Shown here in pieces: positions 20,153 through 51,601 of a DNA stretch of 64,000 nucleotides. Where the stretch lies: NCBI GenBank assembly GCA_025786725.1, contig JAHLTZ010000030.1, positions 124,001-188,000 of the forward strand, written 5' to 3'. Source of the stretch: Syncephalis fuscata S228 (lineage: Eukaryota; Fungi; Zoopagomycota). The first letter of the stretch is position 1; each line of letters begins with the position of its first letter. The position numbers and the translations under genes are program-made. A model generated the notes under the pieces. That model saw only the letters and a program-made list of their open reading frames with translations. It was not told the DNA's origin and did no database searches.

Positions 20153-23100
20153 TTACCAGGCAAGCTGCTCTTGACCGTCATTACAAGCAGCATTGGCAGC
20201 TGGAGCATCGCCGCTACCACAGCCACCTTGACTGGCAGCTGCCTCGCCATTATCTTGCATAGCTACACGGAATAGACGACCGCCATAGCGTTTATACATC
20301 TCGGTAACACCGCCACCAGCCATTAGACGTTCTTCCATAAGACTTAGGCCGAATGGGAAGCGTTCACCGCCACATTCGACTACACGCTGTTTAACATCAA
20401 TACGAATATCGGCACCTTCTTGGGCCAGTTCGTAGAAACGGTCATCAGTAATAATAATGCCCAAAAGCGACATCATAGGCTGGTTACGGCCGTAGATAAA
20501 GGCATATGATCGAGCAATGACTGCTTGAATACCAGCGCCGCGCAAAGCACGTGGTGCTTCTTCACGCGATGAGCCCGAGCCAAATCCAACGCCAGCTACA
20601 ATGATGTTACGGCCTTCAGCAACGCGTGGCACAAACTCCGGTCGGAAATACTGGAAGGCATGCGTGCCCAAATCTTCATCGCTAACACCAGGCATAAACT
20701 CGGCTGGAATAATAGCATCTGTGTCGACATGGTCATCAAATCGTTGTACTTTGCCACTAATCTCTGTTTCAAATTTGGGCAATGAAGCAGCATCTTCGCT
20801 GGCACTTGATGCATTGCCGTCCGATTCAACAGCAGTGGCCAGGACAGGATTGGGCTCGGAAATAACAATAGGATCGCCCTTTTCCATCCAGATCTCCAAC
20901 ATACGTTGGTAGCGTGTTTGGTCGATAACATTAAGCAATTCACGTGGATTGCGTACTTTCATCTCAAAGCTACTGGCAGCAACAGTAGCAGCACTGGCCA
21001 AGTTACCAATCGATCCCTTGCCCATACGATTCTTGAAGTTACGGTTCTGTGAGCTAAGCCATACTTCACCTTCACCGGCACGATCAGCAGCAACAGCAAT
21101 GCAGTAAGAACAGCCTGGTGCACCAATCTCAAAGCCGCACTTTTCGTACACTTCAAGTAGGCCAAGACGGCGTAGTTTGGCAACAATAGGCACGGAGCCC
21201 GGCGTTACCTTACGTTTGCCATTAACGGATGGTACCCAGCCACGGGCCAAACCAGCTTCAAGTACCAAGGCAGCCAAAATCAAATCTTCTTCGGCTGTGG
21301 TGCAAGCACCGATGAAACAGCCATCTAACTGCATACCCGCCACTTCATCAACTGGCACAACATTATCAGGCGATGGATAAAGAGCAATCAATGAATCGAC
21401 CTTGCTAAGATCGATAACATGCGATTCGGCATATTCAGCATCTGGATCGGAACGGAAGTAAAGTGCACTATTCTTATGCTGTGGATCTTTGCGCTTAGCA
21501 ATATAGGCTGCAGTCACTTCATCCGCTTCAAAGACACCGGCAATACCGCCAAATTCGGTTGCCATATTGGAGATGGCGAAGCGAGCATCGCAGCTTAAAT
21601 GACGCAGACCAGATCCGGTAAATTCAACAGCACGTTCAAATGCTACTGTATTACGCTTCAATTCACCAAGTACGTAAAGAATGGCATCTTTTCCACCAAT
21701 ACCAAATGGCGGCCGACCAACAAAGCTATTAGATATTAATTAATTAATTAAATAATTAAGTAAATAAGTAATTAAATAAATGAGTAAGTAAATAAGTAAA
21801 TAAGTAATAATACGCTATTGCTATATATTTGCTTACCGAATTTCAACAGTTTCAGGCACTTTAAACCAAGTCTCGCCTGTAACCAATGGCATAACAACAT
21901 CGGCCGCACCAAGACCAACGGCAAATGCACCTACATTACCGGCCGAACAACTATGCGAATCAGCGCCAATAACAATCATACCAGGCTGAGCACGTTCACG
22001 ACAGAATTCGGTGTGTAAAATGGTATAGTTGGGCTCGTAGAAATCAACCAACTCAGCTTCTTTGGCAAATGATGCACTTGCTTCGATAAGCTCTCGTGGC
22101 TTTGGCTGGTCATTAATACGTGGATCGACCGTGTGGTCAATAGCAAGCCAGAAACGATCATTGCGACGAATCTTTGGTCGTTCCATTTGATCGTATGTCT
22201 TCTCCATACCTTTCCAGGTAAGTTCGCTGGCTAGTGTCCAGTCAACGCTGACACACACCATATCACCAGGCTTGACTTGGCCAGGTCCTTCCAAACCAAT
22301 AGCACCATGGCAGATAATCTTTTCGCAAAGTGTCATGGGACGACGACCAACTGGACGAGTAAGCAAAAGACCCCGGTCTTCAGCCTTGCATAGCGATTGT
22401 AGTTCTGCACGCAAAAGCTCAACAATACGGCTACCAGTTTCAACTGTCGATTTGTCGCCTGCTAAATCGCGTGTACGATAACCGTGACCACCTTCATCAA
22501 CTGGGTCAAGTACACGTCGTACAGCATTCTCAACGGCATGTGCTTCAGCTTCCATCTTCAATGAGTAGCGCAGCATCAAAGCAACGCTTAGAATGGTACC
22601 GATTGGATTGGCAATGCCTTTACCGGCAATATCGGGTGCACTGCCGTGAATTGGCTCGTACAAACCGATACCTTCACCGTTAGGAAGACCATTCAACGAG
22701 GCGCTGGGCAATAAGCCAAGGCTGCCTGGAATAACACTGGCTTCATCACTTAGAATATCACCAAACATATTCTCAGTAAGTACAACGCCGTTAAGTGCAC
22801 GTGGATTCTTGACCATAAGCATAGCAGCTGAATCAACCAGATGGTGGTCAAGTGCTACCTTAGGGAATTCCTGCGCAAATGTTTCGGTGACAATGCGACG
22901 CCACAAGCGTGATGTAGCTAGTACATTGGCCTTGTCAATGCTGTGAACAGCTAGGTGTGGGCGTTGTTGCATAGCAAGGTGGCCAGCCAAACGAGCAATA
23001 CGACGAATTTCGTCGGCGCTGTATGGCATTGTATCCAAAGCTATTAATAGCAATTATAAGCAACTATTAATTTATGAATATATTGTATTATAGCTTACCA

Positions 23101-23694
23101 TGTCCATCAATGTCACCTTCTTTATGTTCGCCAAAGTAGACACCGCCGCATAACTCGCGTACTACGGTGAATTCAGTGCCACGTACTATTTCTTCCTTCA
23201 ATGGACTGCAAGCTACCAGCGACTCACTGGCAAATGATGCTGGACGCAGATTGGCGTATAAATCAAGTGATTTACGCAATTGAAGAATGCCTTCTTCTGG
23301 TCGTGGAGTCATACCCTTGCTGGGATCGGCTGGATCAACTGGATGTGGCCATTGAGGACCACCCACGGCACCTAGCAGAATTGCTTTGGCCGATCGACAA
23401 GCCTCTAGCGTTTCTGTTGGTAGTGGGACGCCTATAAATTAAAATCAATAACAATTAAATAGACAGCTACTATTAGTAACATTTTTATTATTACACGTAG
23501 TTCAGATACTTGCCTGTTGCTTCGATAGCTGCACCACCAATTAAAGCGTGCTCAATCTTTAGTGACGTGCCTAGACGGGCACCGCGTAGCTCGTTTACGG
23601 CTTCGAGCACTTTAATTGCTTCAGTACAGACTTCAGGGCCGATGCCATCGCCCGATACGACGACAATCTTTTCTTCGCGTAAATTATTCGACAT
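20153..23694 (-). CDS. LEU2-LEU1: Fusion protein (~1096 aa): 3-isopropylmalate dehydrogenase (LEU2/LeuB) + aconitase-family dehydratase large domain (LeuC/HacA-like) + swivel small domain (LeuD/HacB-like)
   Basis: Exons 23694-23514, 23431-23099, 23040-21837 and 21725-20153 total 3291 nt in one frame. IPMDH motifs: [63 protein letters not shown]. Dehydratase motifs: [40 protein letters not shown]; [30 protein letters not shown]. Confidence 0.93.
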
Positions 23695-23798
23695 TTTTTT
23701 TGAATACAAGCAATGAGACCAATGACAGCAAATGAGACAAGATGCAATAGCTTACTAAGCTTGCTTTGTTTTAAAAGCAGCCACAACTAAGACCGTGC

Positions 23799-23810
23799 GA
23801 CTCGGAGTCA
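23799..23810 (-). promoter_or_regulatory. Putative Gcn4/CpcA-type site (TGACTC) upstream of LEU2-LEU1
   Basis: GAGTCA at 23805-23810, within the near-palindrome GACTCGGAGTC, ~110 bp upstream of the ATG. Confidence 0.4.
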
Positions 23811-24307
23811 ACAAATATACACGAACTTGTGCAGAACAATACAATAGAAGCCGAAGTTCAATAAGAACCGTTGTTATACGAGAACTAGCAAACAAGAAGG
23901 AGATAAAGAGGTGGGCGCTACTACTTGTAAACACCTATAGTTATACGTGCGCTATCGTCATACTTTTATACTTTGTACGTCGGAGTCCTTCAATGGGAAT
24001 ACGTATTTCTATTTGTGTGCATGTGTGTGGTGTGTGTGTGTGTGTAGAATGTTTGCTATGATGTGTTTTAATCATAGATGTAAAGATGAGATCGATAAGT
24101 ACCAATCAGACATCAGAATCAATTACCACGCTTTATCAATGATCAGCTCAGCGATATGGAAGATTGAGTAAGTGTTTATTGTAATAGATAAGAATAGTTG
24201 GTGTATTAGTTGGTTAGTAATATTAAACAAGTGAACAGTAGTAGTAGTAATAATAACAAAATACTATTATAATCATATTAGATAACTAGCAGTTTATTTA
24301 ATTAATA

Positions 24308-25521
24308 TTAACCAGGTGGGAGCATTGTAGCATCGACCTTGGGCGAGTCATCTGTCGCAGCATCCACTTCATCTGCGTCTTCTCCAAGAATAGGTGCTCG
24401 AGGCATTGCCATAGCGCCTAGAAATAAATAAATAAACAAGTTACACGTCTAAAGACAATATATCTAATAGTATGGCTTACCACTACGAGCTGCTTCCAAA
24501 ATACCAAATGGCTGTACCAATTTAACAAAGGCGTCAATGCGATTGGGCTTGGCACATAGCTCAATAACCACCGAACCAGAACTAACATCAATTACACGAC
24601 CACGGAAAAGACTCGTTAGTTCAGAAAGACCTCGCAGATTGAACTGTGTCTCTTGTAGCATGGCTAATGGATCAACCATATCATTTTGGTCCTATAATCA
24701 ATAATATAATCAATAAATTGATTATTATCTTTAATGTCTTTTTATTACTTACTTGCTCAAGTGATTCTTCCGTATCTTTCTTATGTATTAATCGTTGGCG
24801 AATCATTTCTTGTGCAGCACCCAATGTCGATACCTTGATCAATAGCAATTCTCGTTCAACTAAACGTGAATTTGTATAATCAATGACGGCCCATACTGGT
24901 ACCTAATCCCTTGTTAGATTAACATACACTATTTACATACTATATCTTTATTCATCTTACCAAATCTTCAAGCTGACGTCTAGCTTGTTCAACGACCGAC
25001 TCTTGCCCTTTAACAATAATCGTCATACGACTTAAATCACGTACTTCAGTGCGAGATACAACTAAGCTTTCAATGTTAAAGCCACGTCCAGCAAGAATGC
25101 CGCTCACTCGGCTAAGTACACCCGGCTCGTCTTGGACAAGACAGCTAAGTACACGACGCTGAGATGGCTGTGCAGCATTCTCTGGCGTGTTGTACAGTAT
25201 ATTAGTTACCGCTTCCTCGGCCGTGGGCGTTGGTGGAGTCGGTAGCGGTGGAAAGTGCCGGCGATGGTGGTGCAACTTGAATGCAATGGCCGAGGTCGAC
25301 GGGACCGTTGATTCAGAACGGCATTGGATGCTATTACGTTGATGACCAACGACCGTTGAATTGCTGTTGCTTGATGAACTAACGACGGCTGGTAGTATCG
25401 TACGCTATAATGGCACCATTAGTATCACGTCAAATAGTCTCATTAAACGCGTGTCATTTACCTGAGCAATACGAGCACACGCCAGGCGCGTTACAGCACT
25501 AGACGTTTTAAGTAGAAGCAT
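24308..25521 (-). CDS. ILV6: Acetolactate synthase regulatory (small) subunit, mitochondrial; 5 exons
   Basis: Presequence MLLLKTSSAVTRLACARIAQ; AVTNILYNTP; LSCLVQDEPGVLSRVSGILAGRGFNIESLVV..LSRMTI..VEQARRQLEDLVPVWAVIDY; ERELLLIKV; C-terminal LPPG*. Confidence 0.95.
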
Positions 25522-25582
25522 GCCGTAAAAATAAACGGCAACCAAGTAAGTAATAGATAGATAGATAGATAGACGAGCAGTG

Positions 25583-25588
25583 GAGTCA
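25583..25588 (-). promoter_or_regulatory. Putative Gcn4/CpcA-type site (TGACTC) upstream of ILV6
   Basis: GAGTCA at 25583-25588, ~60 bp upstream of the ATG at 25521. Confidence 0.35.
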
Positions 25589-28500
25589 CAAAGTGGATAA
25601 ACAAGTGGCGTGAAGGAAGTAGCAAAGGAGGGCGGGAAATGAGCGGCTGTCGTAAGGCCAATTTTATACACATCAAATAGAAAGATGCTGATGCTGATGC
25701 TGCTGATGCTGCTGATCGATCAGTAAACAATGCTTTAGACATTGCCAATCAATTTACATTATTAAATTAAGTAATCTATTTACAACATTATAAATGGGTC
25801 AATGAACACAATGAGCCAAGATTTATAAATAATAAAAAGCCAAAATGAAGCAGAAAATAGTTCTAATAACACATAACCAGTACATAATAAACTGATGTAT
25901 AGTAGTTTGGGTATACGATGGAAATGCTATTAATAGATAGAGTATATACTGGATATGTGCGAGCTGAACAAATAAATCTATAATAATGAGTATTTTGGAC
26001 CCTGACGTCGCTCACCATTTAGCTTCGTGTCCAATAGAAAGAATTTCCAGTTCAATTGTGAAAGTGCTATCAAGTGTATTCATTTGACCCACAAATCATA
26101 ATAAATGTGATGATATAATGATTAATATCATTGTAATGATTTTAACACAAATAAAATAACAAAATAAAACATGGCTATTATTGTTTACATAAGTAACGTG
26201 AGTGTAGCTAGTTGTATATGTTAGTAGTCCAATATAATCCAGATAACTGGATGACGTACGAAAGCTGTTGAGCATTATATGCTATTGATTTATAATAAAA
26301 CCAATTATTTAAAGAAATGCTAAATGTTAAAACATCTATGCGAAAGTAGTCGCATTTTCATACCTGTAATTAAGGCGGGTACAATAACAAAGCAGTGTGG
26401 CTTATTGCCTAGTGTGTTGGCTGGTTTGCCAATTACCTTAGCGCTGATATCATTATTGTTAGCAACAATCGGCAGTTATATATACTAGCTTATTAATACA
26501 TCAGCTGTTAAACAATTAAATAAGTATATGTACTATTGCAATCACTTAACGTGTAAGCAGCTGTTTGTTGATCGGTAACATTTATTAGCAATATTTGCAG
26601 CTGTAGATATAGTCAATGTTACTATACTTGCTATGATTCGTACTAGCTATAGGCAATATCGTTTGCATGACTTGCTAGCTGTAGTTAGTAGTAGCACATT
26701 CATATGCACTGACGACTAACGGGAGTATTGCGTTGCCAATTATACTGATGTGGTAGCTATTAATAGTGCTTTGATGGTGCTACAGTATAAATATCATAAT
26801 AAACAATTGACATCCATATATACACACATCCAATGATACACGAAAGCAACAGCAATGATCATGTTTGTTAGCGGATATAAAAACAGCAACCACTGCTTGT
26901 TATAGTTGCAGACCTGTCGATAACATTCAACTGGCATGGATGGCGATCAGTGTCAATATACGTCAGCAATATGCACATATTGGATGCAGTACTAGCAAAC
27001 ATGCAGTTGAGCAATATACAACAACGTGAAATATATGTTAGTGCGCACACAATACCAACGATTAATACGATTGTTATAATCACAAAATAATAGTAGTGCC
27101 ATTGCAATTGATTGTGATCAAAATGCGTGCCAATAGCCATTATATATTAAATAGTATCAATACTCCAATGCTATTCATATGCTACTAATATAGCTTAATA
27201 GGCCAGCTATACTATTAGTCGTACTAGCCAGACAACACGGACACATGATCAACGCTAATAATGGATGGTAATGCATGTACACTAACTAGCAATGGCCAAT
27301 TATTGCTACATCAATCAATGTTGCCAACATACAAGCGACTGTTTACTGCAATTAGTTAGTTAAATATTTAATACACTTTCGATTGGTATTGTGTGCGGTT
27401 ATAATGGCAAAATGGCAAATAAAAACCATTACTGCTTTTTTGGATAAATCAGGCAATTCTTACCGATTTGTAGTTCAATTAATAATATAACTAGAGATAC
27501 GTAATATCATTCATTATGACCACATAATCTTGGAGTGTCGGCACATATAAATTACGTGCTTTTGATAATCATGAGAAAGTGCTAGCAACCAAAACGTGTT
27601 TGAAAATGTCATTTCTCACGATTATATTGCCATTTCTATTTGTAGCACTCTCACGATTTTTCAAAAACACGTAATTTATATGTGCCGACACTCCAAGATT
27701 ATGTGGGCATAATGAAGTATACAATAGTACGGTGGTATGCACAGATAAATAATTGATTACGCATTTTATAACGATGTGTTATTTATGTGTATGTCTGCTT
27801 TATTGACATAAATGGTAGTGTGCATCAAATGTAATCACCACGACCGGTAGGACGTGTAGGTATACGGCATGCTAATGTCTGCCATGTAGCTATTGGCACC
27901 CGCTGATAAAAGTATCGGCAATGCCTATATGTGTTGATACATCATGCAGTTAATAGTAATCGCCGCTTTTAATAATAAAGTATAGTTTAGCAAATAGACT
28001 ATTTGTTTATACCTATGCTAATTGCACGAATATCATGCTGATTCTGTTTATTTGTTTATATTCAGCATGCCTGTATGGACACTTTACCAGCAATGCAGAA
28101 TAGCCATAAACATTGTAATGTTGCACTATTTGTTATTTTTAACGCATATAATTATTGTAAAATGCAATATCTTATGCATAATAATTATGATTGTAGCAAA
28201 AATAACGTATTTCCGTTTCTAGTACTTTGAATACCAACAGAGTGTTGGCTTGTAAATTTAAACGCAAAACCATTGAGTTAATGCTATGATAATATGCAGC
28301 AGTATATAAAGGGTGCGTTCAGTGCCATCAGGCGGTAAACATTTGATGAAATATGCGTTAAAAAGTAATAGCAATCATTTAATTAATAAAGCGTTCCTAA
28401 GATTATTTACAACTTTACGTATAATAAAGCAAATTGCTTGATATTTTGCACAAATATGCACATACTCTATAGGTAGCTATTGACAAAGTATACCGTAATT

Positions 28501-29299
28501 TTATTGTGTTACTGTGCAATGGCAGTGATAATACGCTAATAAATGTACAAAAATAGCAGTTTTTAGCCAACCATGGGCTGTATAACTAAAATACAGCAGA
28601 ATGGCTATTGGATTCGAGTCCTCCATGCTTCGCCGTATCGATTGGTATAAGAAATGGAGCAATGATTTTTGCAAAAAATATTAGCCAAAAATGCGATTTA
28701 CGATATCTAAATTTACTTAAAAAGCATTGTTAAGATTACGTATAACTTTACGTATAATAAAGTAAATCGCTTGATATTTTGCATGAGTATACGTATAACA
28801 TATCTACGACTATTGGCAAAGTATAACGCAACTGCATTGAGTAATGATGTAATGGTTGTGCTAGTATGCTAATAAATGTACAAAAATAACAGTTTTTTAC
28901 CATCCATGACTGATATACTTAAAAGATAGCAAAATGACTGCTGGATTCGAGTTCTTCATGCTTAGCTGTAAGGAATGGCATAAAATATGAAGCAATGATT
29001 TTTGCAACAAAAGTAAGTCAAAAATGCAATTTATGTGTTATTAGTTAACGAAGAATTAAGCTATATGTATATCTATGACATGAATTGCCGATTTTCATTG
29101 ATATTTAACATAATAACTTTCTATTATAATTGCTATACTATTTTAGAACGTTTCAAATTTACTTAGATTGAATTTCATATTTATTATTAAAATTTAAAAT
29201 TTTGAAATTTACTTTTTTTGCAAACAAATAATACGTAAATTGCATTTTGACTGCTGGTCGCAAATGCGTTTATGCTCATTTTCGTTGTCTTTTTTGGCT

Positions 29300-31030
29300 T
29301 TATTTGTCCTAGCTGTTTTTGTCGTTCAGCTGGTGTATGCGTCGCGTCGTCCATTTCCACGTCGTTTTATTGTTGTTATCTTCTTCTGTTTGGTGTTGAC
29401 TTGTCATTTCTACGTCTTCTACTTCTATATCACCCTCTTCTCTCTCTGCCATTGCTGGTTCGTCTTCCAGCGTCATTTTTCCCCATGTCACACATCATTG
29501 TTATCCTCTTGCTTACTTGATCCGTTGGTGGTTAGTAAGTTACTAAAATTTCTTAAGTAATTAACGATTACACTAGCTTATATAATTTTAAGCTAGATAA
29601 CACTTGTAATAAAACTAAGAAAAATAAAATGAAGTAACTGATAATGTTTATTTAAGATAATAAAATGTATGCTTTTTTATACTAAAATGAGCTGAAGTTA
29701 AGAGATATTTGTAAAGGAAGAACTTGTTCGTTCCTTCCGTTTGATGTTGTATATGGTATTATGTTACTTAAATGAATTAGTATCCATGTCTTGTACTAGT
29801 TATTGATTAAAGTTAGCAAGCCCCTTGTAAAGGTCCTGACTTGTTTGCTTGATATGTTAGTTGGGGTACTAACCGCGTGTTAAATAAAAGCTACACAAGT
29901 GTAGTTCCTGACTAAATCACGTGATTTAATGCCAAATAAATTACCATTACCATATTTAGTAATAAATAAATAATTTGATCACATGATCAATTGTTGTATT
30001 TTAGTGTTTGTAACACCATTGTCTCTGCTATTCCTTCTTCCGTTATTTCAACGACAGCTGCTACGGTAGTTAACCACCTTGCTGTCTTTTCTAGCTCTTC
30101 CGTTTGATGTCGCGTTTTCACAACCCCACTAGCTAGATTTACTCCTGCTACTGGTTTTGTCTTTCTTTAATTTACTTTTTTTACTGGTGATGGTACCTCT
30201 TCTTTCTCTTCTGCTACTAGCTTTCCTCCTTTCCTTTTTTCTTCTTCCACCGCTTCACTTTCTTCACCTTCATTCGCCTCTGTCTCTTTTGGCGTTTGCT
30301 GTTGTTCTTCTTGTTGCTTTTCGTGTTCGGCTGCCACTGTATTGTTGGCTGGTGTTGTGTTTCTCTGCTGCCAGCTTTCCGATATACAGTTGGCCGCGAT
30401 ATGTCCCACCATGTGGCACCTGAAGCACGCGTCTCTTGTTCCGATCTTCAGCATCATCGCCTCTACTTTTATTCTTGTCGGTATTCTTTCTCGTCTGCTT
30501 CGACTTTACACACTACTATTGGAGACTCCAATACGCAGTCATAAATCTCTTTTCTAGTCTGTGTATCGCTCAGACTTTGCTGTTTGGCCCCAATTCTTCT
30601 CTCAATTTTTGTGCCACGTGCTCCAACTCTGTTGCCGCGTCCACCCCTATCACTTTCAGTGGTATTGGTGCTGGCCCTTCATAGCTTCTTACTTTGATGT
30701 GCTCTTCTCCAATATAGAATCCTTCTTCACCATCAAATTTACTTGTTGTTTAGAGAATAAGCTAAACACATATTCCCCTGCTGCATTATCAATACTGTAC
30801 TTAATTTTTTTTCCTTCTTTTAATTTCTTAACGATTGCCTGCGCAACCTCTGCTATTCTGTTGACATTTGTCATCTATATACCGATGTAATGTTTTAATA
30901 CTATTTCCTTTCTTAATTTCTTCGCTTCATTTTACATCGTTTTCGCGATGTTGTTTGTTACTTTTTTTCTGAGTAAAGCTGGCGTTGTCGCGTTGCCTTT
31001 TTGTTGCCTTTTTTCTTCTCCTTTTTCCTT
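29300..31030 (-). pseudogene. Decayed gag/LINE-ORF1-like gene with a CCHC zinc knuckle
   Basis: CFRCHMVGHIAANC (CX2CX4HX4C) in ORF 30167-30457, flanked by K/E-rich coding-like fragments in several frames (30689-30874, 29309-29491) with stops and frameshifts. Confidence 0.65.
29486..30015. mobile_element. Solo-LTR-like insertion (530 bp, TG...CA)
   Basis: Ends TGTCACA...TGTAACA (6/7 inverted match). The flanks CCCCA / CCA resemble a target-site duplication. It interrupts E-rich coding sequence (..GIAETM | GKMTLEDE..). Confidence 0.55.
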
Positions 31031-33816
31031 TAAAAAAATATAAATAGAAAGAGTTTGGCATTTTGGCTTACTTTTGTTGCAAAAATCATTGCTTCATATT
31101 TTATGCCATTCCTTACAGCTAAGCATGAAGAACTCGAATCCAGCAGTCATTTTGCTATCTTTTAAGTATATCAGTCATGGATGGTAAAAAACTGTTATTT
31201 TTGTACATTTATTAGCATACTAGCACAACCATTACATCATTACTCAATGCAGTTGCGTTATACTTTGCCAATAGTCGTAGATATGTTATACGTATACTCA
31301 TGCAAAATATCAAGCGATTTACTTTATTATACGTAAAGTTATACGTAATCTTAACAATGCTTTTTAAGTAAATTTAGATATCGTAAATCGCATTTTTGGC
31401 TAATATTTTTTGCAAAAATCATTGCTCCATTTCTTATACCAATCGATACGGCGAAGCATGGAGGACTCGAATCCAATAGCCATTCTGCTGTATTTTAGTT
31501 ATACAGCCCATGGTTGGCTAAAAACTGCTATTTTTGTACATTTATTAGCGTATTATCACTGCCATTGCACAGTAACACAATAAAATTACGGTATACTTTG
31601 TCAATAGCTACCTATAGAGTATGTGCATATTTGTGCAAAATATCAAGCAATTTGCTTTATTATACGTAAAGTTGTAAATAATCTTAGGAACGCTTTATTA
31701 ATTAAATGATTGCTATTACTTTTTAACGCATATTTCATCAAATGTTTACCGCCTGATGGCACTGAACGCACCCTTTATATACTGCTGCATATTATCATAG
31801 CATTAACTCAATGGTTTTGCGTTTAAATTTACAAGCCAACACTCTGTTGGTATTCAAAGTACTAGAAACGGAAATACGTTATTTTTGCTACAATCATAAT
31901 TATTATGCATAAGATATTGCATTTTACAATAATTATATGCGTTAAAAATAACAAATAGTGCAACATTACAATGTTTATGGCTATTCTGCATTGCTGGTAA
32001 AGTGTCCATACAGGCATGCTGAATATAAACAAATAAACAGAATCAGCATGATATTCGTGCAATTAGCATAGGTATAAACAAATAGTCTATTTGCTAAACT
32101 ATACTTTATTATTAAAAGCGGCGATTACTATTAACTGCATGATGTATCAACACATATAGGCATTGCCGATACTTTTATCAGCGGGTGCCAATAGCTACAT
32201 GGCAGACATTAGCATGCCGTATACCTACACGTCCTACCGGTCGTGGTGATTACATTTGATGTACACTACCATTTATGTCAATAAAGCAGACATACACATA
32301 AATAACACATCGTTATAAAATGCGTAATCAATTATTTATCTGTGCATACCACCGTACTATTGTATACTTCATTATGCCACATAATCTTGGAGTGTCGGCA
32401 CATATAAATTACGTGTTTTTGAAAAATCGTGAGAGTGCTACAAATAGAAATGGCAATATAATCGTGAGAAATGACATTTTCAAACACGTTTTGGTTGCTA
32501 GCACTTTCTCATGATTATCAAAAGCACGTAATTTATATGTGCCGACACTCCAAGATTATGTGGTCATAATGAATGATATTACGTATCTCTAGTTATATTA
32601 TTAATTGAACTACAAATCGGTAAGAATTGCCTGATTTATCCAAAAAAGCAGTAATGGTTTTTATTTGCCATTTTGCCATTATAACCGCACACAATACCAA
32701 TCGAAAGTGTATTAAATATTTAACTAACTAATTGCAGTAAACAGTCGCTTGTATGTTGGCAACATTGATTGATGTAGCAATAACTGGCCATTGCTAGTTA
32801 GTGTACATACATTACCATCCATTATTAGCGTTGATCATGTGTCCGTGTTGTCTGGCTAGTACGACTAATAGTATAGCTGGCCTATTAAGCTATATTAGTA
32901 GCATATGAATAGCATTGGAGTATTGATACTATTTAATATATAATGGCTATTGGCACGCATTTTGATCACAATCAATCGCAATGGCACTACTATTATTTTG
33001 TGATTATAACAATCGTATTAATCGTTGGTATTGTGTGCGCACTAACATATATTTCACGTTGTTGTACATTGCTCAACTGCATGTTTGCTAGTACTGCATC
33101 CAATATGTGCATATTGCTGACGTATATTGACACTGATCGCCATCCATGCCAGTTGAATGTTATCGACAGGTCTGCAACTATAACAAGCAGTGGTTGCTGT
33201 TTTTATATCCGCTAACAAACATGATCATTGCTGTTGCTTTCGTGTATCATTGGATGTGTGTATATATGGATGTCAACTGTTTAGTATGATATTTATATTG
33301 TAATGTTGATTTCCATCATGGTGCCATGCCTACCTTGTTTATAAATAATATCAAATACAGCCACTTTCTTATAGCTACTCTAACATCTAGCATATTTAAA
33401 TAGTAACTTTATTATAAAAGCAATACTAATGGAATCTTCAGTAGTTTGGTATGTCATTCATTTACCTGGATTGTATTCGGTATAGCCACACTCACATTAG
33501 TCACTTTAGTAATGATACCAGTAATTTATTTAGTTGGCTTATTTGTGTTATGGCTGTTACATTAGTATTATTAAAAAATCATCTGATTTCCAAATCACAC
33601 TAAATCATGAATTTAGCGATTTAAATTTTATTTTATTTTTTATTTTATTTTACAACTTTTACGTTAAACTCGTCGCATAGTTTGAATTCACTTTCTTTAT
33701 TACTCGTAACTCAGTAGGAATTGGTACCGAACTTTTATAAGCTATTTAAGATTCTGCGATCTTGGTTATAATTGTGATCCTAAATCATTCTAGTTAATAG
33801 TAAAATAACTATTACT

Positions 33817-34401
33817 ATGTCGTCTACAGATCTTTTGGTTGATGCTTCGGCCGCAAAAACAAGCCTTTCAGTATCAGAGGCAATGCCTACATTAAAAACA
33901 CGGGTATCAGGTAGATAGAATAATGCGTATTGTAGAAAGGATGTTTTATTAATAATATGATAACTGGTACATATTTGCTGATAGGCCGTACATGGCGTGT
34001 AGTAAAACAGCCAGCTCATCGCAGTATGATGGCAAAGTCACTAAAGACAACATGGTCGGCCAGACAAGCAGAAAAGACTAAGCAAATGCAACTAAAACGT
34101 CGAGAAGATGCTATTAAAACAAAAACAGAGTTGGAACGCCAAGTATGTAGCTTATAAGCAATTAAATGATAATAATAATAATAATAATAATAATCAACTA
34201 TTAATTATCTTTATATGTATATAGAAACGCAATGATGCACTTCGACAGAAACGCTTGGCTAAAGAAGAAAAGGAAAGACTTGAAAAGCAACAAGCTATTG
34301 TAAGTAGAAACTCCCCTTTGTTTAGCTTGTTATTGACGTGCATTTAGTACTCGGCCAAGAAACTTGATAGACTTCGCAGAAAACAAAAGAAAAAGAACTA
34401 A
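33817..34401 (+). CDS. CGR1: rRNA-processing protein Cgr1, 4 exons
   Basis: Spliced RVSGRTWRVVKQP..KTTWSARQ..; K/E/R-rich coiled coil ending YSAKKLDRLRRKQKKKN*. Confidence 0.8.
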
Positions 34402-34501
34402 GCGTTATAATATTAAATAATATATTTTCGTATATTACTGGTGTAGCCTATGCAATGATTGCTGGTGTGTCATGAACCAATAAACAATAGTAATAGCTTT
34501 A

Positions 34502-35621
34502 TTAAACAGGCAAGGGACGTCGTTCACTCGATGTGCCATCATCTTCATCAGGTGCTTGATTCCAGTATCGGCGTATTGTAGCATTCCAAGTAATAATAAA
34601 TAAACCGCCTAAGTCATACGCTTCTACAGGTGCACTATTAGAATATCTTGGCCGTTCCTCGTCCAAGCTATTACGAACTGTATCGGCAAGCCGTTCATAA
34701 CGAGCATTGCCCCGATGCAAATTTGCTGCTTCCCATATACGATCGATAACACGACGTCGGGTATTTAAGCTTTGATGTTCGTCTCCATCTAGTGTTGTAC
34801 TATTGCCATGTAATAACGATTCGCTGTTCTGTATCGATGATATTGTCGGCGATACACGAGCACTGGCCGTGTTATCACGTAGGTTATTTTGCGTTGAGCT
34901 ATTAATACGGCCACGATAATTATCACGGTTAGCAATAAATTCCGACGATCCTCTTTGTGGCGATTGACGAGATGGTTGTGACTGTTCTGCATTGCCTACA
35001 TTACGTCTCCAAAATGCCCACCAATGACGTGTTGTCGTCGTATCTGTTCTATGCGAATGCTCGGATAATCGGCCAATTCCATGACCATGGTGGTCATAGG
35101 TATTAGTATTCTGATGGATAGCTACTATCATTACTAATTGTGCACAACATATTATTACATCGTAGAATAATAGCATTAAACGGCCTGAGTTGGGAGCTAA
35201 AATCATTCAATGTATGTATAAATATGAGTTACGTCATTAAGCATAACGCAAATAAATAGTATTTACTCGTTACTTGAGTGAGTGCTACTTACCGGAACCA
35301 ATAAAATCAATAATTATACCGCGATCCCCCAGTGGCTGTATCCGACGTAGTGCACATAATATATTGGTTGCCAAGATTATGCCAAAGGAAGAGCGCAGTG
35401 TTTTAGATTGAGGATCTGTAATTAAATACTGTAACAATAACGGCGATGAATGAGTATACAATCTAGCTTCTGTCAACACATGTACTTACCAGGTTGATGC
35501 CTCCACGTAGAGCTAGAAAAATAACACTGTAGTCCAGGTAATAGACTGCAGACAGCTGAACATACAATAACCAGAGCAATGCCTGGTTAAGATTGTGTTT
35601 GGCCAAGATTGCCGTGTCCAT
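34502..35621 (-). CDS. DUF1746 (Dsc4-like) membrane protein, 3 exons
   Basis: YYLDYS..LALRG, TNILC, GIIIDFIG, LLFYDVIICCAQLVM match the DUF1746 pattern, followed by a disordered tail. Confidence 0.7.
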
Positions 35622-35889
35622 CAACAAGCAATATTACTACTAATAGCACGCGAATAGTTGACAACAGTGATACGGCCAATGTGGTAATGTTCAGCGTGAT
35701 TGCCTGTCCAACATGAACAGGAAGAGTAAATGAGAAGGTAAATAAGAAGGAAGGAGAGAGAGAAGCCTTTTTCAGTAAAATATTTAATCCAGTTGTTTCA
35801 TGTTAAATAATGTTTATATTAATAATGGTGATGGTGCCATTTATATATTGCTATTCATTTTATAACGCTTATTTTCTACTATTAATCTA

Positions 35890-38673: not shown

Positions 38674-39825
38674 ATGTCAGATGATTTTAGTTCAAACTCT
38701 ATTGATGGTGTGACTCCAACAAGATCTCCATTGCCTGGAACTAACCCAATTGGAGACATTATTATGGCAGTTCTATTTCTTATAGTTGGCTGCCTTCACC
38801 TTTGGCGCTACAGCCAGACACATACTAAATACCATGTAGTGATGGCCGGTGCTGTATTAGTCGCTATACTTGCCTATTGCGTAACCTTTGTTGCTGCATA
38901 TAGTTTCAATGCTATAGTGGTAAATTACATGTCACCAGTATTACTTTTTTCAGAGTGGATAATTATGATTATTATTGCGCATTTGACAATATTATGGTAG
39001 GTTATATTTGCTTTTTTGCTTTACTTAATTATCACGCATCCACGTAAATATTGTATCGATATTATAATAGCACGTATTTAACTATATTTTTGCAACAGGA
39101 GTCGCTCTATGGGAAAGGTAATTAACCAACGAGCCCAATTGGTTTATCGATTTGGAATCGGTGGAATAGTTGTCCATAGCATTAGCAGCGCATTGATGAT
39201 TAGCAGTTGGGTCATTTATCTTAATCCTACTACTCTAGCGGCGTTTAAGGCAATACTTATTCTTACTTATCTTGGTTATGGCATAGCTTTAGCATTCAAT
39301 CTTCTCTCAATCTGTTTGTTTATTTGGCAATTTGTGGAAACCAAAAAATATGGTATTCCAGGATTGGGCTTTAAGCGTAGACAACTGCTCGTATTGACAG
39401 TCCATTGCATTTTAATATTCATAGTTGATATGTTCTACTTCCTTGGCCCCGTCAGGGCTGGTCATGTTTTCCATGTTCTTGTTTTGAGTGTCGGTGTCTA
39501 TACACGTGAGGCGTTAACAGGATTTGACGAAGAACCTGTTGTTACCAGTTGCATTCCTGCTGTTATACCCACTGCTGCTTACGATCAACAAACGGTAAAT
39601 ATGATAGATGATCCTAATGTGGTGTTCAAACAGCCTGGTGCTTGTCAACATCATATCGGCACTAAAGAAGCTATTACAACTACTCCAGCTACCGATTCTA
39701 ATGTGCAAACTGCCAGCTTTCCTAAATCTAATACTTCGCCATTTAGTGATGACTATGCTCTTGCGGTTGAGGATCCAGTTTCAAATTCAATCCAAATGTT
39801 GGACCTTATCCACAAAAATAGCTGA
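38674..39825 (+). CDS. Multi-pass (6-7 TM) membrane protein, RTA1-like/7TM, 2 exons
   Basis: Intron ~38997-39098 joins ORFs 38674 and 39109. The first helices IIMAVLFLIVGCLHLWRY..KYHVVM..G resemble the RTA1 N-terminus. Confidence 0.65.
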
Positions 39826-40903
39826 TTTTGAGGCTATTTATGATATATTCGCATTGCATTAACATTGATTAATTCAAATGAATAAACAATAAGGAGCAGC
39901 AGTTTAATATAAAAATGTCTATTTGAAAGTGTGTGCTTTTGCTCAGAGCTTTACCCTATTATGCTTTATTTGTAACTATTGTCTGTTCAAATCCAGCTTT
40001 ACTATTTATGAAAGTGTGTTGTTTTGCTCATCAAGTCATACGCAGCAATAGAACAAACTATATTGTAAATAACATTGCAGTATAAGGAAAATGAAATATG
40101 AAAATAAATAATATATGTATACTAAATACTAAATCTATAATAATGAGTATTTATATCATTTTATTTTGCATTTTATAAAAGCAGTCTACCAATCACATAG
40201 TGTATGATTTATTTCATAACTTCCTTTTTCTCTTTTTTACACTTGATAATATTTATCGATTGTACACATTATGCATTTATATGATATTTAGATAGTGCCA
40301 GTAGCTGACTGATTAATAGTTAGGTGCAAACACATTTTACATTACTCTTTTGTAATTTGACCTTTTCTATTGTATTTTTTTACATACTAATCAACGATTA
40401 ACAAGTAAAAGTTTGCAATGACATTGGATTGCCTTCTATTTTGCTATATCGCATCCTTTTCAATTGTGGCAGTGGCCAATAAGCAGCCAAAGCGAGTGAA
40501 AATCTTTTTATGTCGAATTATTCCATACATTTGCATTTGTATATTGATATTAGTAATAATGACAATAGTGACCACAATACTATTAGAAACAATAAAATTA
40601 AAGATAGCATTTGATTTAGTTGATTTAGTTATAATAATAGTAATTTTATAGATTTTATATAATAACAATAATACAGGTTTATTATTTTTTTGGTAGAGTA
40701 GTAATACCGAAAACAACTAAATAGTGTGTATTTGATTTTATAGTTGGTGTCTGGTTTATAAAACACTGAATCTGTGAGCGATTAAAACTAGTCTCTTTTT
40801 CTCCGTGTTCCACTATCGTTTCCTTTTCTTCTTTCTATTATATAACCATAACCATCAATTGGTGCAGCGATTGCTGCCTGTCTCTCTACATTACTCAGCT
40901 ATT

Positions 40904-41732
40904 ATGGGGCCCAAACCACGCGTAAACACCACTAGTCGAGGTGGCAATTATAGCTCGGCCGCTCATGCTAGTGGCGGCGGAGGCGATACTAGCAATAGTC
41001 ACTCATCAATGCATGCTCATAACACTGGCCATGGCAGTGGCAGTGGCAGTGGCAATACGGGTGGACATGGTGCTGGCAGTGGCGCTACTGCTCGTGGCAA
41101 GGCAAAGCCTCGAGGCAGTAGTCATAGTCATGCGGCTCATGCTATGGAGGATGCTTACGGAGCAAACGGTATGTCTGGAATGGCCAGTGATATGGCAAAT
41201 GGTAGTTATGGTCATAGTGAATTTTTGTCCTCTGCTAATACTGCTGCAGTTAGTGGTAATAGTGCCGTCAATGGCGGTGTAAGCTCAAAATATGATCCAA
41301 AAGGCCAAGCAACTGATCAGGTAAGCCACAAGCCGATTATTGTCTGCTAATGATGCATTAGAATAGTATTAGCACGATTTAGCGTCTATGCAATAATAGC
41401 AAATTAACTAACAAAAATCTAAAAAAACAATAGCTTGATTTTTCAACATTGCCGGCTCCGACATTACGTCGCTATCAACGTGTACATAAGCTGCATTATG
41501 GCAAGGTGCGAGGTGGCCATAGAGAAGATTTGGCCAGTGCTGTTACTAAGCATTTTAACAATCAACTGGTTAATGAACTCGAATCAATTGCCTGGTTTAT
41601 TTATGCCGCTCGTAGTCGAGGCAAGTACTATTTATCGTTTAGCTAACTACTACTTTATTAATATTTTGCATATTTATTTTGCATATTTATTTAGATAATG
41701 AACTTAAATTATCCCAAAAACCGCCGACTTAA
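40904..41732 (+). CDS. SAP30: Sin3/HDAC complex subunit with a SAP30 Sin3-binding domain, 3 exons
   Basis: G/S/H-rich N-terminus, then LDFSTLPAPTLRRYQRVHKL...LASAVTKHFNNQLVNELESIAWFIY. Confidence 0.8.
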
Positions 41733-42380: not shown

Positions 42381-44605
42381 TTATTGAGGTGGACCAAGTA
42401 CCATTTCATGAAGCGCCTTGCCAGCCGGTACCATCGGGTAGACGTGCTCGCTTGGATCACACATAGCTTCAAGCACCACAGGTCCATCGTGATTCAAGAA
42501 CTCGGCCATTATTTGTGGTAGTTCGGCTTGGCTACGAACACGTAGACCGCGACAGCCCATAGATTCGGCCAATAGAACAAAGTCTGGATTGCGCATAGGT
42601 GTGCCAGAATAGCGTTCTTCGTAGAATAAATCCTGCCATTGCTTAACCATACCTTGGAAGTCGTTGTTAAGCACGAGGGCTTTTACGCCAATGTTATACT
42701 GTGATGCGGTGGCCAATTCCATAGCCGTCATACTAAATGATGCATCACCATCAATGTCAATGACCATTTTTTCTGGTTGGGCCACTTTAGCACCAATGGC
42801 GGCCGGTAAGCCGTAGCCCATTGTGCCTAGCCCGCCCGAAGTGACCATAGTGCGTGGATGACGCCAGCGATAGTATTGAGCTGCCCACATTTGATGCTGG
42901 CCAACACCCGTGGAAAGAATGACATTTTCTTTGCAGTGGGCCAATTGACGATTCATTTCGGCCAAGACGGCTTGTGGCTTTAGTCGTGCAGTGACTTCAT
43001 CACTCGCATGTGGCTTATATGTGAATGGATATTTCTGCTTCCACTCGGTTACTTGGTTAAACCAATCACGACGTTCGGCGTGTTGAAGCAACGGTAGTAG
43101 GCGTGCAACATTGACAGTCACGTCGCCTTCAACCGCCTCGGTTGCTTGCACAACTTTGTTAATATTCTTTGGCATAATTTCAAAGTGAATAATGCCACCA
43201 CGACCTTGTTCAGCTGCCAAGCGAGCTTGTGGAGCAAATCCTATATCGTATCAATATTAGTATTAATAAAATACGCTTTCGTATTCATTATAACTTACGG
43301 TTAACATCGCCTGTTACACGATCATCAAAACGAGCACCCAATGCAATGACAACATCGGCCTCTTGCATGGCCAGGTTAGCATATGCACTGCCATGCATAC
43401 CTAGCATATGCAAACTACGTGGATCTTCTTCGTCAAAGGCACCTAGCCCCATGAGCGTGGTAGTAACTGGGATATTGGCCTGATCGACCAATTGACGTAG
43501 CAATTGAGGACCTTGCTCGTTTGCTAGCATACCTTGGCCTACGTAAAGCAACGGACGTTTTGCGGCATTAATAAGCTTGGCCGCTCGTAGAATCGATTCA
43601 TGAACGCTTTGCTCGCCCGCTTCCATTCTCGAATTAGCTGTGGAGAATGGTGCTGGACGGGAGGGAATAGCACGAGGTGGCGGAATTGGCTTATTGAGAA
43701 TAGCTGCTGTCACGTTTTTGGGTAAATCTACCAATACTGGACCTGGTCTACCTGTTGTGGCAATCTGGAATGCTTCATCGATACGAAGTGGCAGATCGGC
43801 AATATCTTTTACCATAACATTCCACTATTAATATAGTCATTATATATTAATACTATTATAAGCCAAATCATAAATATGCTTACCTTGGTACAAGCACGTG
43901 AAATGCCAACAATGTCGGCTTCTTGGAATGCATCTGTGCCGATTGACGACGTAGGCACTTGACCGCAAAATACTACTAGTGGCGTACCGTCCGAGTAGGC
44001 ATCCTGCATAGCCGTAACGACATTGGTAGCACCAGGACCTGAGGTAACTAGAACAACACCTGGTTTACCACTATAAACATATTATTATCATTATTATTAT
44101 TATTAGTTAATCAAATAAAGTTAAGTGTTGTATCTACTCACCTTGCCCGTGCATAACCTTCGGCCATATGGCCAGCTCCTTGTTCATGGCGTGGCAGCAC
44201 GAAATCAAAGTGTTTCGACTGGTAGATGGCATCAAATACGGGTAGAATAGCACCACCCGGATAACCAAAGACGTGCTTAACATTATGGCGTAGCATCATC
44301 TCGTGAAATATCTGACCACCAGACATGCCAATGAAGCTAGTATCTTCCGCTTCAATCTTGGACGTAAAAGATGTATTATTCAGCTTAATAGGTGCTGGTG
44401 CTTTAGCCATTGTCGCCGCTGCCGGTGCTGTAGACGACGGCTTTAGCGCAGTGGCCGTTGCATCTCGAGACGTCGATTGCCAGCGCAAAGCCGATACGGC
44501 CAACGACTTGTTTGCTACGCTATTAGCCGTTGCCGCACATACACGACGTTGGCCTAGCGCAGAGCCACACCGAGCCGTACGAGATAGCTGACGCACAGAT
44601 AACAT
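42381..44605 (-). CDS. ILV2: Acetolactate synthase catalytic subunit, mitochondrial; 4 exons
   Basis: [88 protein letters not shown], ThDP motif GDASF..NN. Confidence 0.97.
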
Positions 44606-45888
44606 AGTAAAAGACGTGACTCAAGTAAGTAAGACTAATCAGTAAAAGAAGTCAAAAGATTACAAAATAATAGGCGGAAATAGATAGGCAAACAGTTGCG
44701 CTATTTAACTATTATACTCAAGGATTAACACTGCCAATAACTATTATTATAAATCCTATTGGTGAAACACCTGCATATATTATACGTACGTAGGTGGTAT
44801 AGAGGTATATAGTGAACAGCAGGATATGCGTGAATCAAACGTAGGCGTGCGTGTGTGTCTGTGTCTGTCTGTGTACTTTGCAAATACTGCTCATAAATAC
44901 CAATATTTATTTAGAATTTGCTGATGGCTGATGATCTTTGCTGATTGGTTAGATCTTATCAAATTTGCCTGGGTGTGAGCATGTGCGGTGTGTGTGTATG
45001 TATTGGCATATGTGTGTGACTCGGATAACACCATTCAAGTCATGCGAAGATGGATCATCTTGTTTTTACCAAAATGGTTTTATACCAATCATTATCAAGT
45101 ATGAAAGGCGACGGATCAATTGGTTTACTCGTCATTGTTGTCAAATCGTCACGTTTAATTATGAGATAGCACGTCGTTAACAATAAGCTATGCTTAAAAT
45201 AGATAAAAAAACAAGTAGTAATTAGCTGTAACATAATGCGTATTCGATTGTTTAATTAATGAAAAAACACTGGTTTATGTATTATCTGTTTGTTTGCTAT
45301 ACTTATATTGGTATTAGTATTTAATAGCGCTGTTAACAATAGCAATCACCTGGTTATTAGTCGTGTGATGAGTGTAAACCTGGCGTTGAGTTATTAAATG
45401 GTCTAGATTGCCGGCTAATAGTTGCTGATTAGTTAGGCGTGTGCTGTGAATTCCAGTCAGGTGTGCAATTCAAGATCCGTTAATCACTATTTGCCCACGA
45501 ACGTGTAAAAATAACCGCTGATGAGATTAAACATCAGTGATGCAATCGTTGATTAGTTCAATGGGGGAAAAGGCCATACACACATACAGCAGACACACGA
45601 TAACAGATGATCAGTGGTTCTTTAAATGGAAACCTTAACACTGATTGGATGAATACTATCGTCTTTACGCGTCTTTGGTGTGATACCGCCTATTTTTCCA
45701 TCTTGTGTATACACACGCCGAAACATTGACCTCAGCAAGTTACTGCTTTTAAAAACCGGCGCGTTGTCCATTCATCGCCGGTCTTTCCTTCAACAACTAC
45801 TGCGAATATTACTATCTGTTTTTTTACTTTTAACCTTTAAAGCCTTTATTACTTGACTATCTACGCTACTACAACTAGTACCACTGCT
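44606..45888. promoter_or_regulatory. Bidirectional intergenic region shared by ILV2 and ILV5, with TGACTCA (44617-44623) and TGACTC (45017-45022)
   Basis: Head-to-head gene orientation; the motifs are visible in the sequence. Confidence 0.55.
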
Positions 45889-47172
45889 ATGGCTTCCTTT
45901 GCTCGTCAGCTTCTACGTTCGGCGCCACGTACAACGGCCACCTTGACTTCCCGTGTCGCTGCTCGTGCCACACTTACCACACTTGCTCGCCGTTCAACTC
46001 TGCAAGCCGTGTCGCGTCGTGCTCCTGTTGCTGCCATCGGTTCGGTAAGTAGAAGCCGCGTTAATACTGGTCCGACAACTATATTTACTTATGTTTTGAC
46101 TATTATTTTCATAATAGGTACGCACTTTTAAAACACTCGACTTTGGCGGTACCAAAGAAGTCGTTTACGAACGATCGATTATCCAAATGAGAAGCTTAAG
46201 AAAATCTTTGCTCAAGATACACTTGCCGTGATCGGCTATGGTCCTCAGGGCCGTGGTCAATCGCTCAACTTGCGCGACAATGGCCTTAATGTTGTTGTAG
46301 GCGTGCGTAAAGACGGTCGCTCCTGGAAACAAGCCGTTGAAGAAGGCTGGACACCCGGTAAGAACCTTTTCGAAATTGAAGAGGCTTGCTCGCGCGGTAC
46401 CGTCATCATGAATCTACTTTCTGATGCGGCCCAGACTCAATTGTGGTCAACAGTGAAGAAATATCTTACAAAGGGCAAAACCCTTTACTTCAGCCACGGC
46501 TTCTCTGTTGTCTATCACGATCAGACAAAGATTACGCCACCAGCAGACATTGATGTCGTCCTCGTAGCGCCTAAGGGATCTGGATTTACGGTCCGTCGTC
46601 TCTTTGAACAAGGCCGTGGTATCAACTCGTCGTATGCCGTCTACCAAGATGTATCTGGCCAGGCTAGCGAGCGTGCCCGTGCTCTAGGCATTGCCGTCGG
46701 CAGTGGCTATCTCTACGAGACGACCTTTGAAAAGGAAGTCTACTCGGATTTGGCTGGTGAGCGTGGTGCGTTGATGGGTGGTATTTACGGCCTATTCCTC
46801 GCTCAGTATGAAGTATTGCGCGCACGTGGTCACTCGCCATCCGAAGCGTTTAATGAGACTGTCGAAGAGGCAACTCAATCGCTCTATCCACTCATTGGTG
46901 AAAAGGGCATGGACTGGATGTACTCGAACTGCTCGACCACTGCTCAACGTGGTGCTCTCGACTGGTACCGTCCATTCCACGACGCATGCAAGCCAGTGTT
47001 TGAACGTCTATATGATCAAGTAGAAAATGGTGCCGAAACACGCCGTAGTCTCGTTGAGAACTCACGTCCCGACTACCGTGAACGTTTGGAGGCTGAGCTC
47101 AAGGAGATTGACGAGCATGAGATGTGGCGTGCTGGCAAGACTGTGCGCAGTCTTCGCCCAGAGAATCAATAA
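45889..47172 (+). CDS. ILV5: Ketol-acid reductoisomerase, mitochondrial; 2 exons
   Basis: R/A/T-rich presequence; intron 46045-46117; LDFGGTKEVVYER; IGYGPQGRGQSLNLRDNG; SHGF; VAPKGSG; EVYSDLAGERG; NCSTTAQRGALDW; VRSLRPENQ*. One apparent 1-nt deletion at ~46177. Confidence 0.96.
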
Positions 47173-51400: not shown

Positions 51401-51601
51401 GCGACTCTATACTCCATCGTCTATTCACGTTTCTCTATTCATTCTATTATCCACTAGTTTATCACCATTATTTCTCGTATACAAGCTCTTATTATACAGT
51501 TAGTGCTGGCCATTATTATCCTATTTGACGCCCTTTATTATTACCTATCCTTCACGTTTATTCGTGTCTGTTATTATATATTACATCCCGTTCGAAACAA
51601 C

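Follow-up and report, generated by a model that had tools for sequence, protein, structure and literature searches.

A four-gene branched-chain amino-acid cluster in Syncephalis fuscata

Four genes for branched-chain amino-acid (BCAA) synthesis, ILV2, ILV5, ILV6 and a fusion of LEU2 with an isomerase gene, lie within a total span of 27,020 bp in Syncephalis fuscata S228, a mycoparasite of the Zoopagales (Zoopagomycota). The window analyzed is a 64,000-bp stretch of contig JAHLTZ010000030.1 (here C224:124001-188000), and unprefixed positions are counted from its first base. The locus is likely to be a vertically inherited cluster of native genes that came together no later than the common ancestor of Zoopagomycota and Mucoromycota and then broke up independently in many lineages. 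Five enzyme activities at the locus are matched by Pfam search, and its gene models are as follows.

20153..23694, − strand: LEU2/LeuB fused to an archaeal-like LeuC/LeuD-type isomerase (1096 aa, 4 exons; Pfam Iso_dh, Aconitase, Aconitase_C)
23694-23514, 23431-23099, 23040-21837, 21725-20153, − strand: exons of the fusion; the first intron is GC-AG
23695..24307: gap from the ILV6 stop to the fusion start (613 bp), with one TGACTC about 116 bp upstream of the fusion start
24308..25521, − strand: ILV6, acetolactate synthase (ALS) regulatory subunit (324 aa, 5 exons)
42381..44605, − strand: ILV2, ALS catalytic subunit (678 aa, 4 exons; fungal-type ALS)
44606..45888: divergent promoter region of ILV2 and ILV5 (1283 bp), with two TGACTC sites, one of them kept in S. 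plumigaleata
45889..47172, + strand: ILV5, ketol-acid reductoisomerase (about 403 aa; intron 46045-46117; one base absent from the assembly near 46175)

These models and Pfam matches agree in place and orientation with the first-pass annotation of the window, which had described four BCAA genes with five functions in 27 kb as two pairs and had placed both ALS subunits there. The fusion and ILV6, reported in tandem at about 610 bp, are both on the − strand at the measured 613 bp, and ILV2 and ILV5, reported head-to-head, diverge from their 1283-bp region. The mitochondrial presequences proposed for the ILV proteins likewise fit the basic, acid-free, presequence-like N-termini: residues 1-40 of ILV2, ILV5 and ILV6 include 4-7 Arg/Lys and no acidic residue. 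The same region of the fusion has seven acidic residues.

For frame checks and trees, spliced gene models were joined in local scripts; database searches used single exons or stored homologues. The reading frame of the fusion is open throughout, with no internal stop, and shares 90.5% identity with S. plumigaleata P0332. The junction between its LEU2 and isomerase domains falls within a single exon. The ILV5 exons fail to join in frame at a 1-base frameshift near 46175. This frameshift is an assembly error, because the missing base is present both in a transcript contig and in S. plumigaleata ILV5, and the transcript contig without the frameshift rules out a pseudogene. The public S. fuscata ILV5 protein (P0001, 392 aa) is missing some 11 conserved residues at the same site, and its annotation there is probably wrong.

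Across the assembly (29.4 Mb, 371 contigs), ILV2, ILV5, ILV6 and the LEU2 domain are present in one copy each, which settles the earlier question of whether the window holds the sole copies. ILV3 (C40, C129, C322), a LEU4-type synthase (C13), ILV1 (C113) and BAT-family genes (C46, C57) are on other contigs, in line with their reported absence from the window. By an analytic approximation, the chance that four of the nine pathway loci would fall inside 27 kb of a 29.4-Mb assembly is ~4e-7, which places the co-location beyond chance. The ILV3 copies on C40, C129 and C322 are near-identical, and other genes are also doubled (C96/C321, C224/C357); these represent redundant haplotigs or segmental duplication.

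Conservation of the cluster in other fungi

Other fungi were surveyed from one anchor per species in a 10-kb view, and absences are therefore provisional. In S. plumigaleata, the order ILV2(−) ILV5(+) ILV6(+) fusion(+) occupies 10.5 kb with no genes in between. Thamnocephalis sphaerospora keeps this order until its contig ends within LEU2, and a metagenome contig from a Zoopagales relative carries ILV5, ILV6 and LEU2. In Actinomortierella ambigua, a member of Mucoromycota, ILV2(−) ILV5(+) ILV6(−) fusion(+) span 12.3 kb between flanks unrelated to those of Syncephalis. Further Mortierellales have ILV5/ILV6 or ILV6/fusion adjacent, as judged from consecutive accessions or locus tags. ILV6 and the fusion are head-to-head in Calcarisporiella, ILV6 and ILV5 are head-to-head in Dimargaris, and in Geosiphon ILV6 and the fusion share a contig at a distance of 45 loci. 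Wherever both ILV2 and ILV5 were seen (four of four genomes), they are head-to-head, and ILV6 adjoins the fusion in Zoopagales, Mortierellales and Calcarisporiella.

The locus thus has the properties of a metabolic cluster, with at least three non-paralogous pathway genes in proximity and a linkage that is kept while the flanks change (Syncephalis versus Actinomortierella). Conserved microsynteny, which the first-pass annotation had put forward as a check, was found in Zoopagales and Mortierellales, contrary to the absence of linkage that, together with uncorrelated expression, it had named as evidence against a cluster. In most Mucorales with both matches listed, ILV5 and ILV6 lie on differently sized contigs; in Rhizopus stolonifer they share one 3-Mb contig, 690 accessions apart. 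At the checked loci of Paraphysoderma, Synchytrium and Entophlyctis, no partner gene is found within 10 kb.

Two further features were seen at these loci. In Calcarisporiella, a gene for a BCDHK_Adom3/HATPase kinase (branched-chain ketoacid or pyruvate dehydrogenase kinase family; L035:4762-6719) adjoins ILV6 and the fusion. In Basidiobolus meristosporus, two ILV5 genes are head-to-head, 691 bp apart (L016:8107-11203).

Origin and persistence of the linkage

Introns are present in all four genes and their closest matches are fungal. Together with the trees, these features rule out a recently imported bacterial ilv-leu operon. The earlier view that native genes were assembled holds, on the evidence of spliceosomal introns, a fungal-type ALS, trees that follow fungal groups and linkage in relatives. 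In the ILV5 tree, 10 of 10 fungal groups are monophyletic, nine of them at bootstrap values of 88-100; the tree does not resolve the deep branching. The fusion tree places Mortierellales in a group with Glomeromycotina and Jimgerdemannia (Shimodaira–Hasegawa-like approximate likelihood ratio test, SH-aLRT, 99), apart from Zoopagales, and blastoclads and chytrids fall outside the terrestrial-fungus clade. In the same tree, 0.6-0.7 changes per site separate Syncephalis from all sequences outside Zoopagales, a distance that excludes recent transfer between groups. These data are best explained by one origin that predates the Zoopagomycota/Mucoromycota split and by repeated decay thereafter, and ancient transfer is disfavoured.

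Several observations weigh against this history or against current selection on the linkage. The approximately unbiased (AU) test leaves a forced clade of Zoopagales and Mortierellales unrejected (p=0.206, or 0.113 with Calcarisporiella) at a cost of 19 log-likelihood units. No partner gene lies within 10 kb at the checked loci of Coemansia, Neoconidiobolus and Basidiobolus, so that many losses of the cluster are needed. Unrelated genes are also long-lived near the fusion, namely NDH2/RGS in Syncephalis and Coemansia and ADA2 in Actinomortierella and Calcarisporiella. S. fuscata tolerates a split cluster, which argues against strong current selection, and S. plumigaleata has no TGACTC site (Gcn4-like) in its ILV6 and LEU promoters. 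Finally, BCAA feeding of Mortierella alpina shifted these genes by at most 4-fold (PMC8880518).

The long-lived synteny of unrelated neighbours, the lack of the cluster in many lineages and the expression of ILV2 and ILV5 in S. fuscata across a 17-kb split would all be expected if the cluster had formed once, by chance or past selection, and were now passively kept in slowly eroding microsynteny with no current co-regulation. This is unlikely: Syncephalis and Actinomortierella share all four genes in the same order between flanks that differ on both sides, and passive retention leaves the original co-location (~4e-7) unexplained. An ancient horizontal move of the cluster between Zoopagales and Mucoromycota is improbable. 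The distribution is patchy, the AU test does not reject the forced clade, and the parasitic lifestyle of Zoopagales puts them in contact with Mucoromycota. Against such a move, the best trees separate the two groups and are better than the constrained tree by the 19 units given above, the branch lengths exclude a recent event, and partial clusters occur in Dimargaris and Calcarisporiella. Convergent assembly of the same genes in both groups is very improbable, even though ILV6 differs in orientation between them and the intermediate lineages checked lack the cluster, because the order ILV2-ILV5-ILV6-LEU is identical, ILV2 and ILV5 are head-to-head in both, and both leave ILV3, LEU4, ILV1 and BAT out of the four-gene block.

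Vertical inheritance from a common ancestor has a consequence for other fungi. Dikarya descend from the same ancestor as Zoopagomycota and Mucoromycota, and the scattered ILV/LEU genes of yeast would therefore be derived. The chances are evenly balanced that a co-regulated ILV2-ILV5-ILV6-LEU2/isomerase cluster, centred on a bifunctional enzyme whose isomerase is archaeal-like, already existed in the common ancestor of terrestrial fungi including Dikarya, both the scattered genes and the separate LEU1 of yeasts and moulds being derived. If so, this would be among the oldest eukaryotic clusters of core anabolism, and its stepwise break-up would be traceable in living genomes. In the ILV5 tree, a protein of the amoeba Balamuthia mandrillaris (P0029) sits among the fungi beside Dimargaritales (support 86/82), by transfer or as a tree artefact.

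An inversion splits the S. fuscata copy

Synteny was examined by tblastn against Thamnocephalis L013 and by annotation of L013 and L019, and repeats were found by self-BLAST. In Thamnocephalis, the order is Sel1(−), gene A(+), DUF1746(−), SAP30(+), ILV2(−), ILV5(+), ILV6(+), LEU(+). In the S. fuscata window, it is LEU(−), ILV6(−), gene A(+), DUF1746(−), SAP30(+), ILV2(−), ILV5(+), Sel1(+). A single inversion of ~14 kb, comprising the block from gene A to ILV5, converts one order into the other. Because S. plumigaleata has the Thamnocephalis order for the genes visible at its locus, the S. fuscata layout is derived. The 27-kb layout of two pairs, present as first described, is a broken version of a compact 10-12 kb cluster. 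The features of the rearranged region are listed here.

25888..26128: left-breakpoint copy, diverged, of a dispersed repeat; its counterpart at 47.4-47.7 kb (72-74% identity; self-BLAST) is in the opposite orientation
26781..33302: foldback element in the left breakpoint zone, with 2243-bp arms (26781-29023 and 31061-33302, 99.6% identity) around a 2-kb core
33865..35627: two genes carried along in the inverted block, gene A (conserved, unnamed; + strand) and a DUF1746 gene (− strand), located by tblastn against Thamnocephalis
40805..41628, + strand: SAP30, a conserved ILV2 neighbour in Zoopagales
47424..48469: right-breakpoint repeat element, with a duplicate at 54.8-55.7 kb
51467..53571, + strand: Sel1-repeat gene, the Thamnocephalis orthologue of which bounds the inverted block on its far side

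Each breakpoint falls in repeat DNA. One dispersed repeat family has copies at 25.9-26.1 and 47.4-47.7 kb that are 68-74% alike and inverted relative to each other, and several other copies within the window. The inversion was probably repeat-mediated. A mis-join of the contig across the repeats at 26.8-37 kb is extremely improbable: although the region is rich in near-identical repeats, the repeat copies common to both breakpoints are too diverged to mislead an assembler, and the adjacency of the four genes in relatives rules out a mis-join as the source of the linkage. At most, the inversion and not the cluster is open to assembly doubt.

Other rearrangements and repeats are found nearby. 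An RGS-domain gene (11066-12168) lies between the fusion and an NDH2-like gene; in S. plumigaleata it is on the far side of NDH2 and in the opposite orientation, which constitutes a second local rearrangement. An unnamed membrane-protein-like gene with no Pfam match (38626-39825) stands between DUF1746 and SAP30 and is absent from that interval in S. plumigaleata. The core between the 2243-bp arms contains a zinc-knuckle-like remnant near 30.4 kb (− strand; element region 26781-33561). This element belongs to a family of large, near-identical inverted repeats, of which a further example has 920-bp arms (13022-13940 and 17899-18818) around open reading frames at 14.2-15.3 kb.

Expression and regulation

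Transcript evidence consists of contigs from one assembled RNA-like run. One spliced contig of 2385 nt spans all four ILV2 exons, and ILV5 has its own spliced contig on the opposite strand; the two genes are expressed as separate transcripts. A polycistronic operon, in which one transcript covers several same-strand genes, is thereby excluded for ILV2 and ILV5. Of the first-pass description of an "operon-like BCAA cluster", the cluster stands and the operon does not.

In the 2.7 kb of S. fuscata promoter DNA, four TGACTC sites are present where ~0.7 would be expected from the window rate of 0.25/kb (Poisson p ~0.005). Just one of the four is kept in S. plumigaleata, and for this reason the enrichment may be regarded as weak evidence of co-regulation. 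Leu3-type CCG-N4-CGG sites were not found in the S. fuscata cluster promoters. A k-mer scan without background pointed to a CATCAGC-like word in 10 of 15 promoter regions, and it was not used as evidence.

ILV2 with ILV6, and then ILV5, catalyze the first two shared steps of valine, isoleucine and leucine synthesis in mitochondria. The second and third steps of the leucine branch are catalyzed in the cytosol by the isomerase and dehydrogenase. With the ILV enzymes mitochondrial and the fusion cytosolic, whole-pathway channelling or polycistronic transcription is not the reason that these genes are linked. Putative shared cis-regulation is the most likely reason. Each cluster gene would have its own transcript, and the linkage would persist through promoter or chromatin control common to neighbours under amino-acid limitation. 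The ILV2/ILV5 and ILV6/LEU pairs may be the more constrained units, the S. fuscata inversion having cut between them.

Comparison with known clusters

In model yeasts and moulds, BCAA genes are scattered, and known clusters of fungal primary metabolism, such as those for GAL, DAL, nitrate and biotin, are few. For the BCAA pathway in land fungi, the clustered state seems ancestral and the dispersed state derived, which is the reverse of the yeast-based picture. As in the GAL, DAL, nitrate and biotin clusters (reviewed in PMC7539958), unrelated enzymes of one pathway are adjacent, separately transcribed, arranged with divergent promoters and patchily retained. In contrast to those systems, the BCAA cluster serves core anabolic amino-acid synthesis, covers part of a pathway across two compartments, contains no internal regulator or transporter gene and appears older than the Zoopagomycota/Mucoromycota split. 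Its content overlaps that of bacterial ilvBNC-leu operons (ALS large and small subunits, ketol-acid reductoisomerase, LeuB and LeuC/D). Unlike these, the fungal cluster is divergent and not polycistronic, has introns, presequence-like N-termini and fungal-type ILV genes, and has no leuA in the block.

Partial versions of the cluster are already known from M. alpina, for which two partly duplicated clusters, ilvB-ilvF1-ilvE1 and ilvF2-ilvE2-leuB1, are stated in one sentence (PMC8880518). They contain the same genes (ILV2, ILV6, ILV5 and LEU2) and are very likely two partial copies of the present cluster. Those clusters have three genes each in one species, whereas the four-gene form is found here in two phyla. 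The main text of that paper does not use "fusion" or "fused" and makes no cross-species comparison of the cluster. In the literature outside subscription journals, no report was found of cross-phylum conservation or of the LEU2–isomerase fusion.

The living genomes can be arranged as a natural series. The cluster is whole in S. plumigaleata and Actinomortierella and divided by an inversion in S. fuscata; a pair is left in each of Calcarisporiella and Dimargaris, and elsewhere the cluster is absent. This series allows the question of why eukaryotic metabolic genes cluster to be tested, with S. fuscata and S. plumigaleata as a direct contrast.

The LEU2–isomerase fusion protein

The two halves of the fusion were compared with profile models with cut-offs of 353.2 bits (leuB TIGR00169, equivalog), 560 (leuC TIGR00170) and 385-410 (archaeal-type models). 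The N-terminal half is predicted to be a true isopropylmalate dehydrogenase, since S. plumigaleata P0332 (374.8 bits; ~90% identical to the window fusion) and Mortierella P0289 (480.1 bits) exceed the leuB cut-off and the top structure matches of this half are all isopropylmalate dehydrogenases. A single LEU2 exon from the window scores 256.8 bits on its own, against the same cut-off that the whole-gene orthologue P0332 passes.

The label LEU1, given to the isomerase half in the first-pass annotation, had to be withdrawn. This half is not an orthologue of yeast LEU1: in P0332 it scores 145 bits on leuC, far under the cut-off, and it is best matched by archaeal-type LeuC/HacA models (268-302 bits, also below their cut-offs). 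Its best-matching solved structures are archaeal isopropylmalate/citramalate isomerase and homoaconitase (PDB 4nqy, 4kp2, 3vba, 2pkp; E ~1e-55). With yeast LEU1 and bacterial LeuC it has in common the aconitase-family fold, the [4Fe-4S] cysteines, GSSRE and, putatively, the same reaction, but it belongs to a different subfamily and is attached behind LeuB. It differs from the Methanocaldococcus isopropylmalate/citramalate isomerase and homoaconitase in sharing one chain with LeuB and in a specificity loop that is mostly FMPG.

The window fusion has the Fe-S cysteine motifs and the GSSRE motif, and both cysteine motifs are present in 84 of 86 homologues. Its specificity loop (defined after PMC7308503) has FMPG, as in most fusions, and lacks the homoaconitase arginine; the corresponding sequence is YLRT in homoaconitase and YLVY in the isomerase. 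No match over the TIGR00170 cut-off, and hence no canonical LEU1, was found anywhere in the S. fuscata genome, which holds separate ACO1-, ACO2- and LYS4-like genes. Triple fusions of LeuA, LeuB and isomerase (1340-1820 aa) are present in Leptophrys vorax and metagenome eukaryotes (P0351, P0355, P0360, P0123). On the basis of the motifs, the loop without arginine, the missing LEU1, the separate ACO/LYS4 genes and the triple fusions, the likely function of the fused domain is that of an isopropylmalate isomerase. As the only candidate for this activity in S. fuscata, it would stand in for LEU1.

An addition compatible with a vertically inherited cluster is that the four genes form a consecutive module of the citramalate route to isoleucine, in which an isomerase of broad specificity and LeuB would make 2-oxobutyrate for ILV2/ILV6 and ILV5. 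This would account for the clustering of these genes and not ILV3 or LEU4, and the top solved-structure match of the isomerase half is an isopropylmalate/citramalate isomerase. In addition, a separate LEU1 homologue (E=0) is reported for M. alpina, alongside leuB1 of the cluster (PMC8880518, Table 1). Such a module has a low probability, however, given that in S. fuscata the fused domain has no LEU1 beside it to supply isopropylmalate isomerase, an ILV1-type gene is present and no citramalate synthase was identified. Moreover, the apparent compartments differ, cytosol for the fusion and mitochondria for the ILV proteins, and other eukaryotes fuse LeuB and isomerase domains to LeuA.

The fusion appears from its sequence distribution to be old and widespread. 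Full-length fusions occur in blastoclads, chytrids, Piromyces, Entomophthorales, Kickxellales, Dimargaritales, Mortierellales and Glomeromycotina, and further in Neolecta, some Pezizomycotina and protists such as Salpingoeca and Petalomonas, which rules out a Syncephalis novelty. These proteins point to a predicted LEU2–isomerase bifunctional enzyme, widespread in early-diverging fungi, for which no earlier description was found.

A second gene is repeatedly found near the fusion. In Paraphysoderma (L021:6670-8504), Synchytrium (L022:3261-4757) and Entophlyctis (L023:8162-9055), an orthologous mitochondrial carrier is head-to-head with the fusion or one gene away from it. Its identification as OAC1, the isopropylmalate exporter, was not supported, domain annotation giving just "mitochondrial carrier"; its motifs presumably place it closer to the S-adenosylmethionine carrier group. 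The association of carrier and fusion may be an older linkage. In S. fuscata, the carrier orthologue (C224:49455-49919) shares a contig with the fusion at a distance of 94 kb, and a second copy is present on C357.

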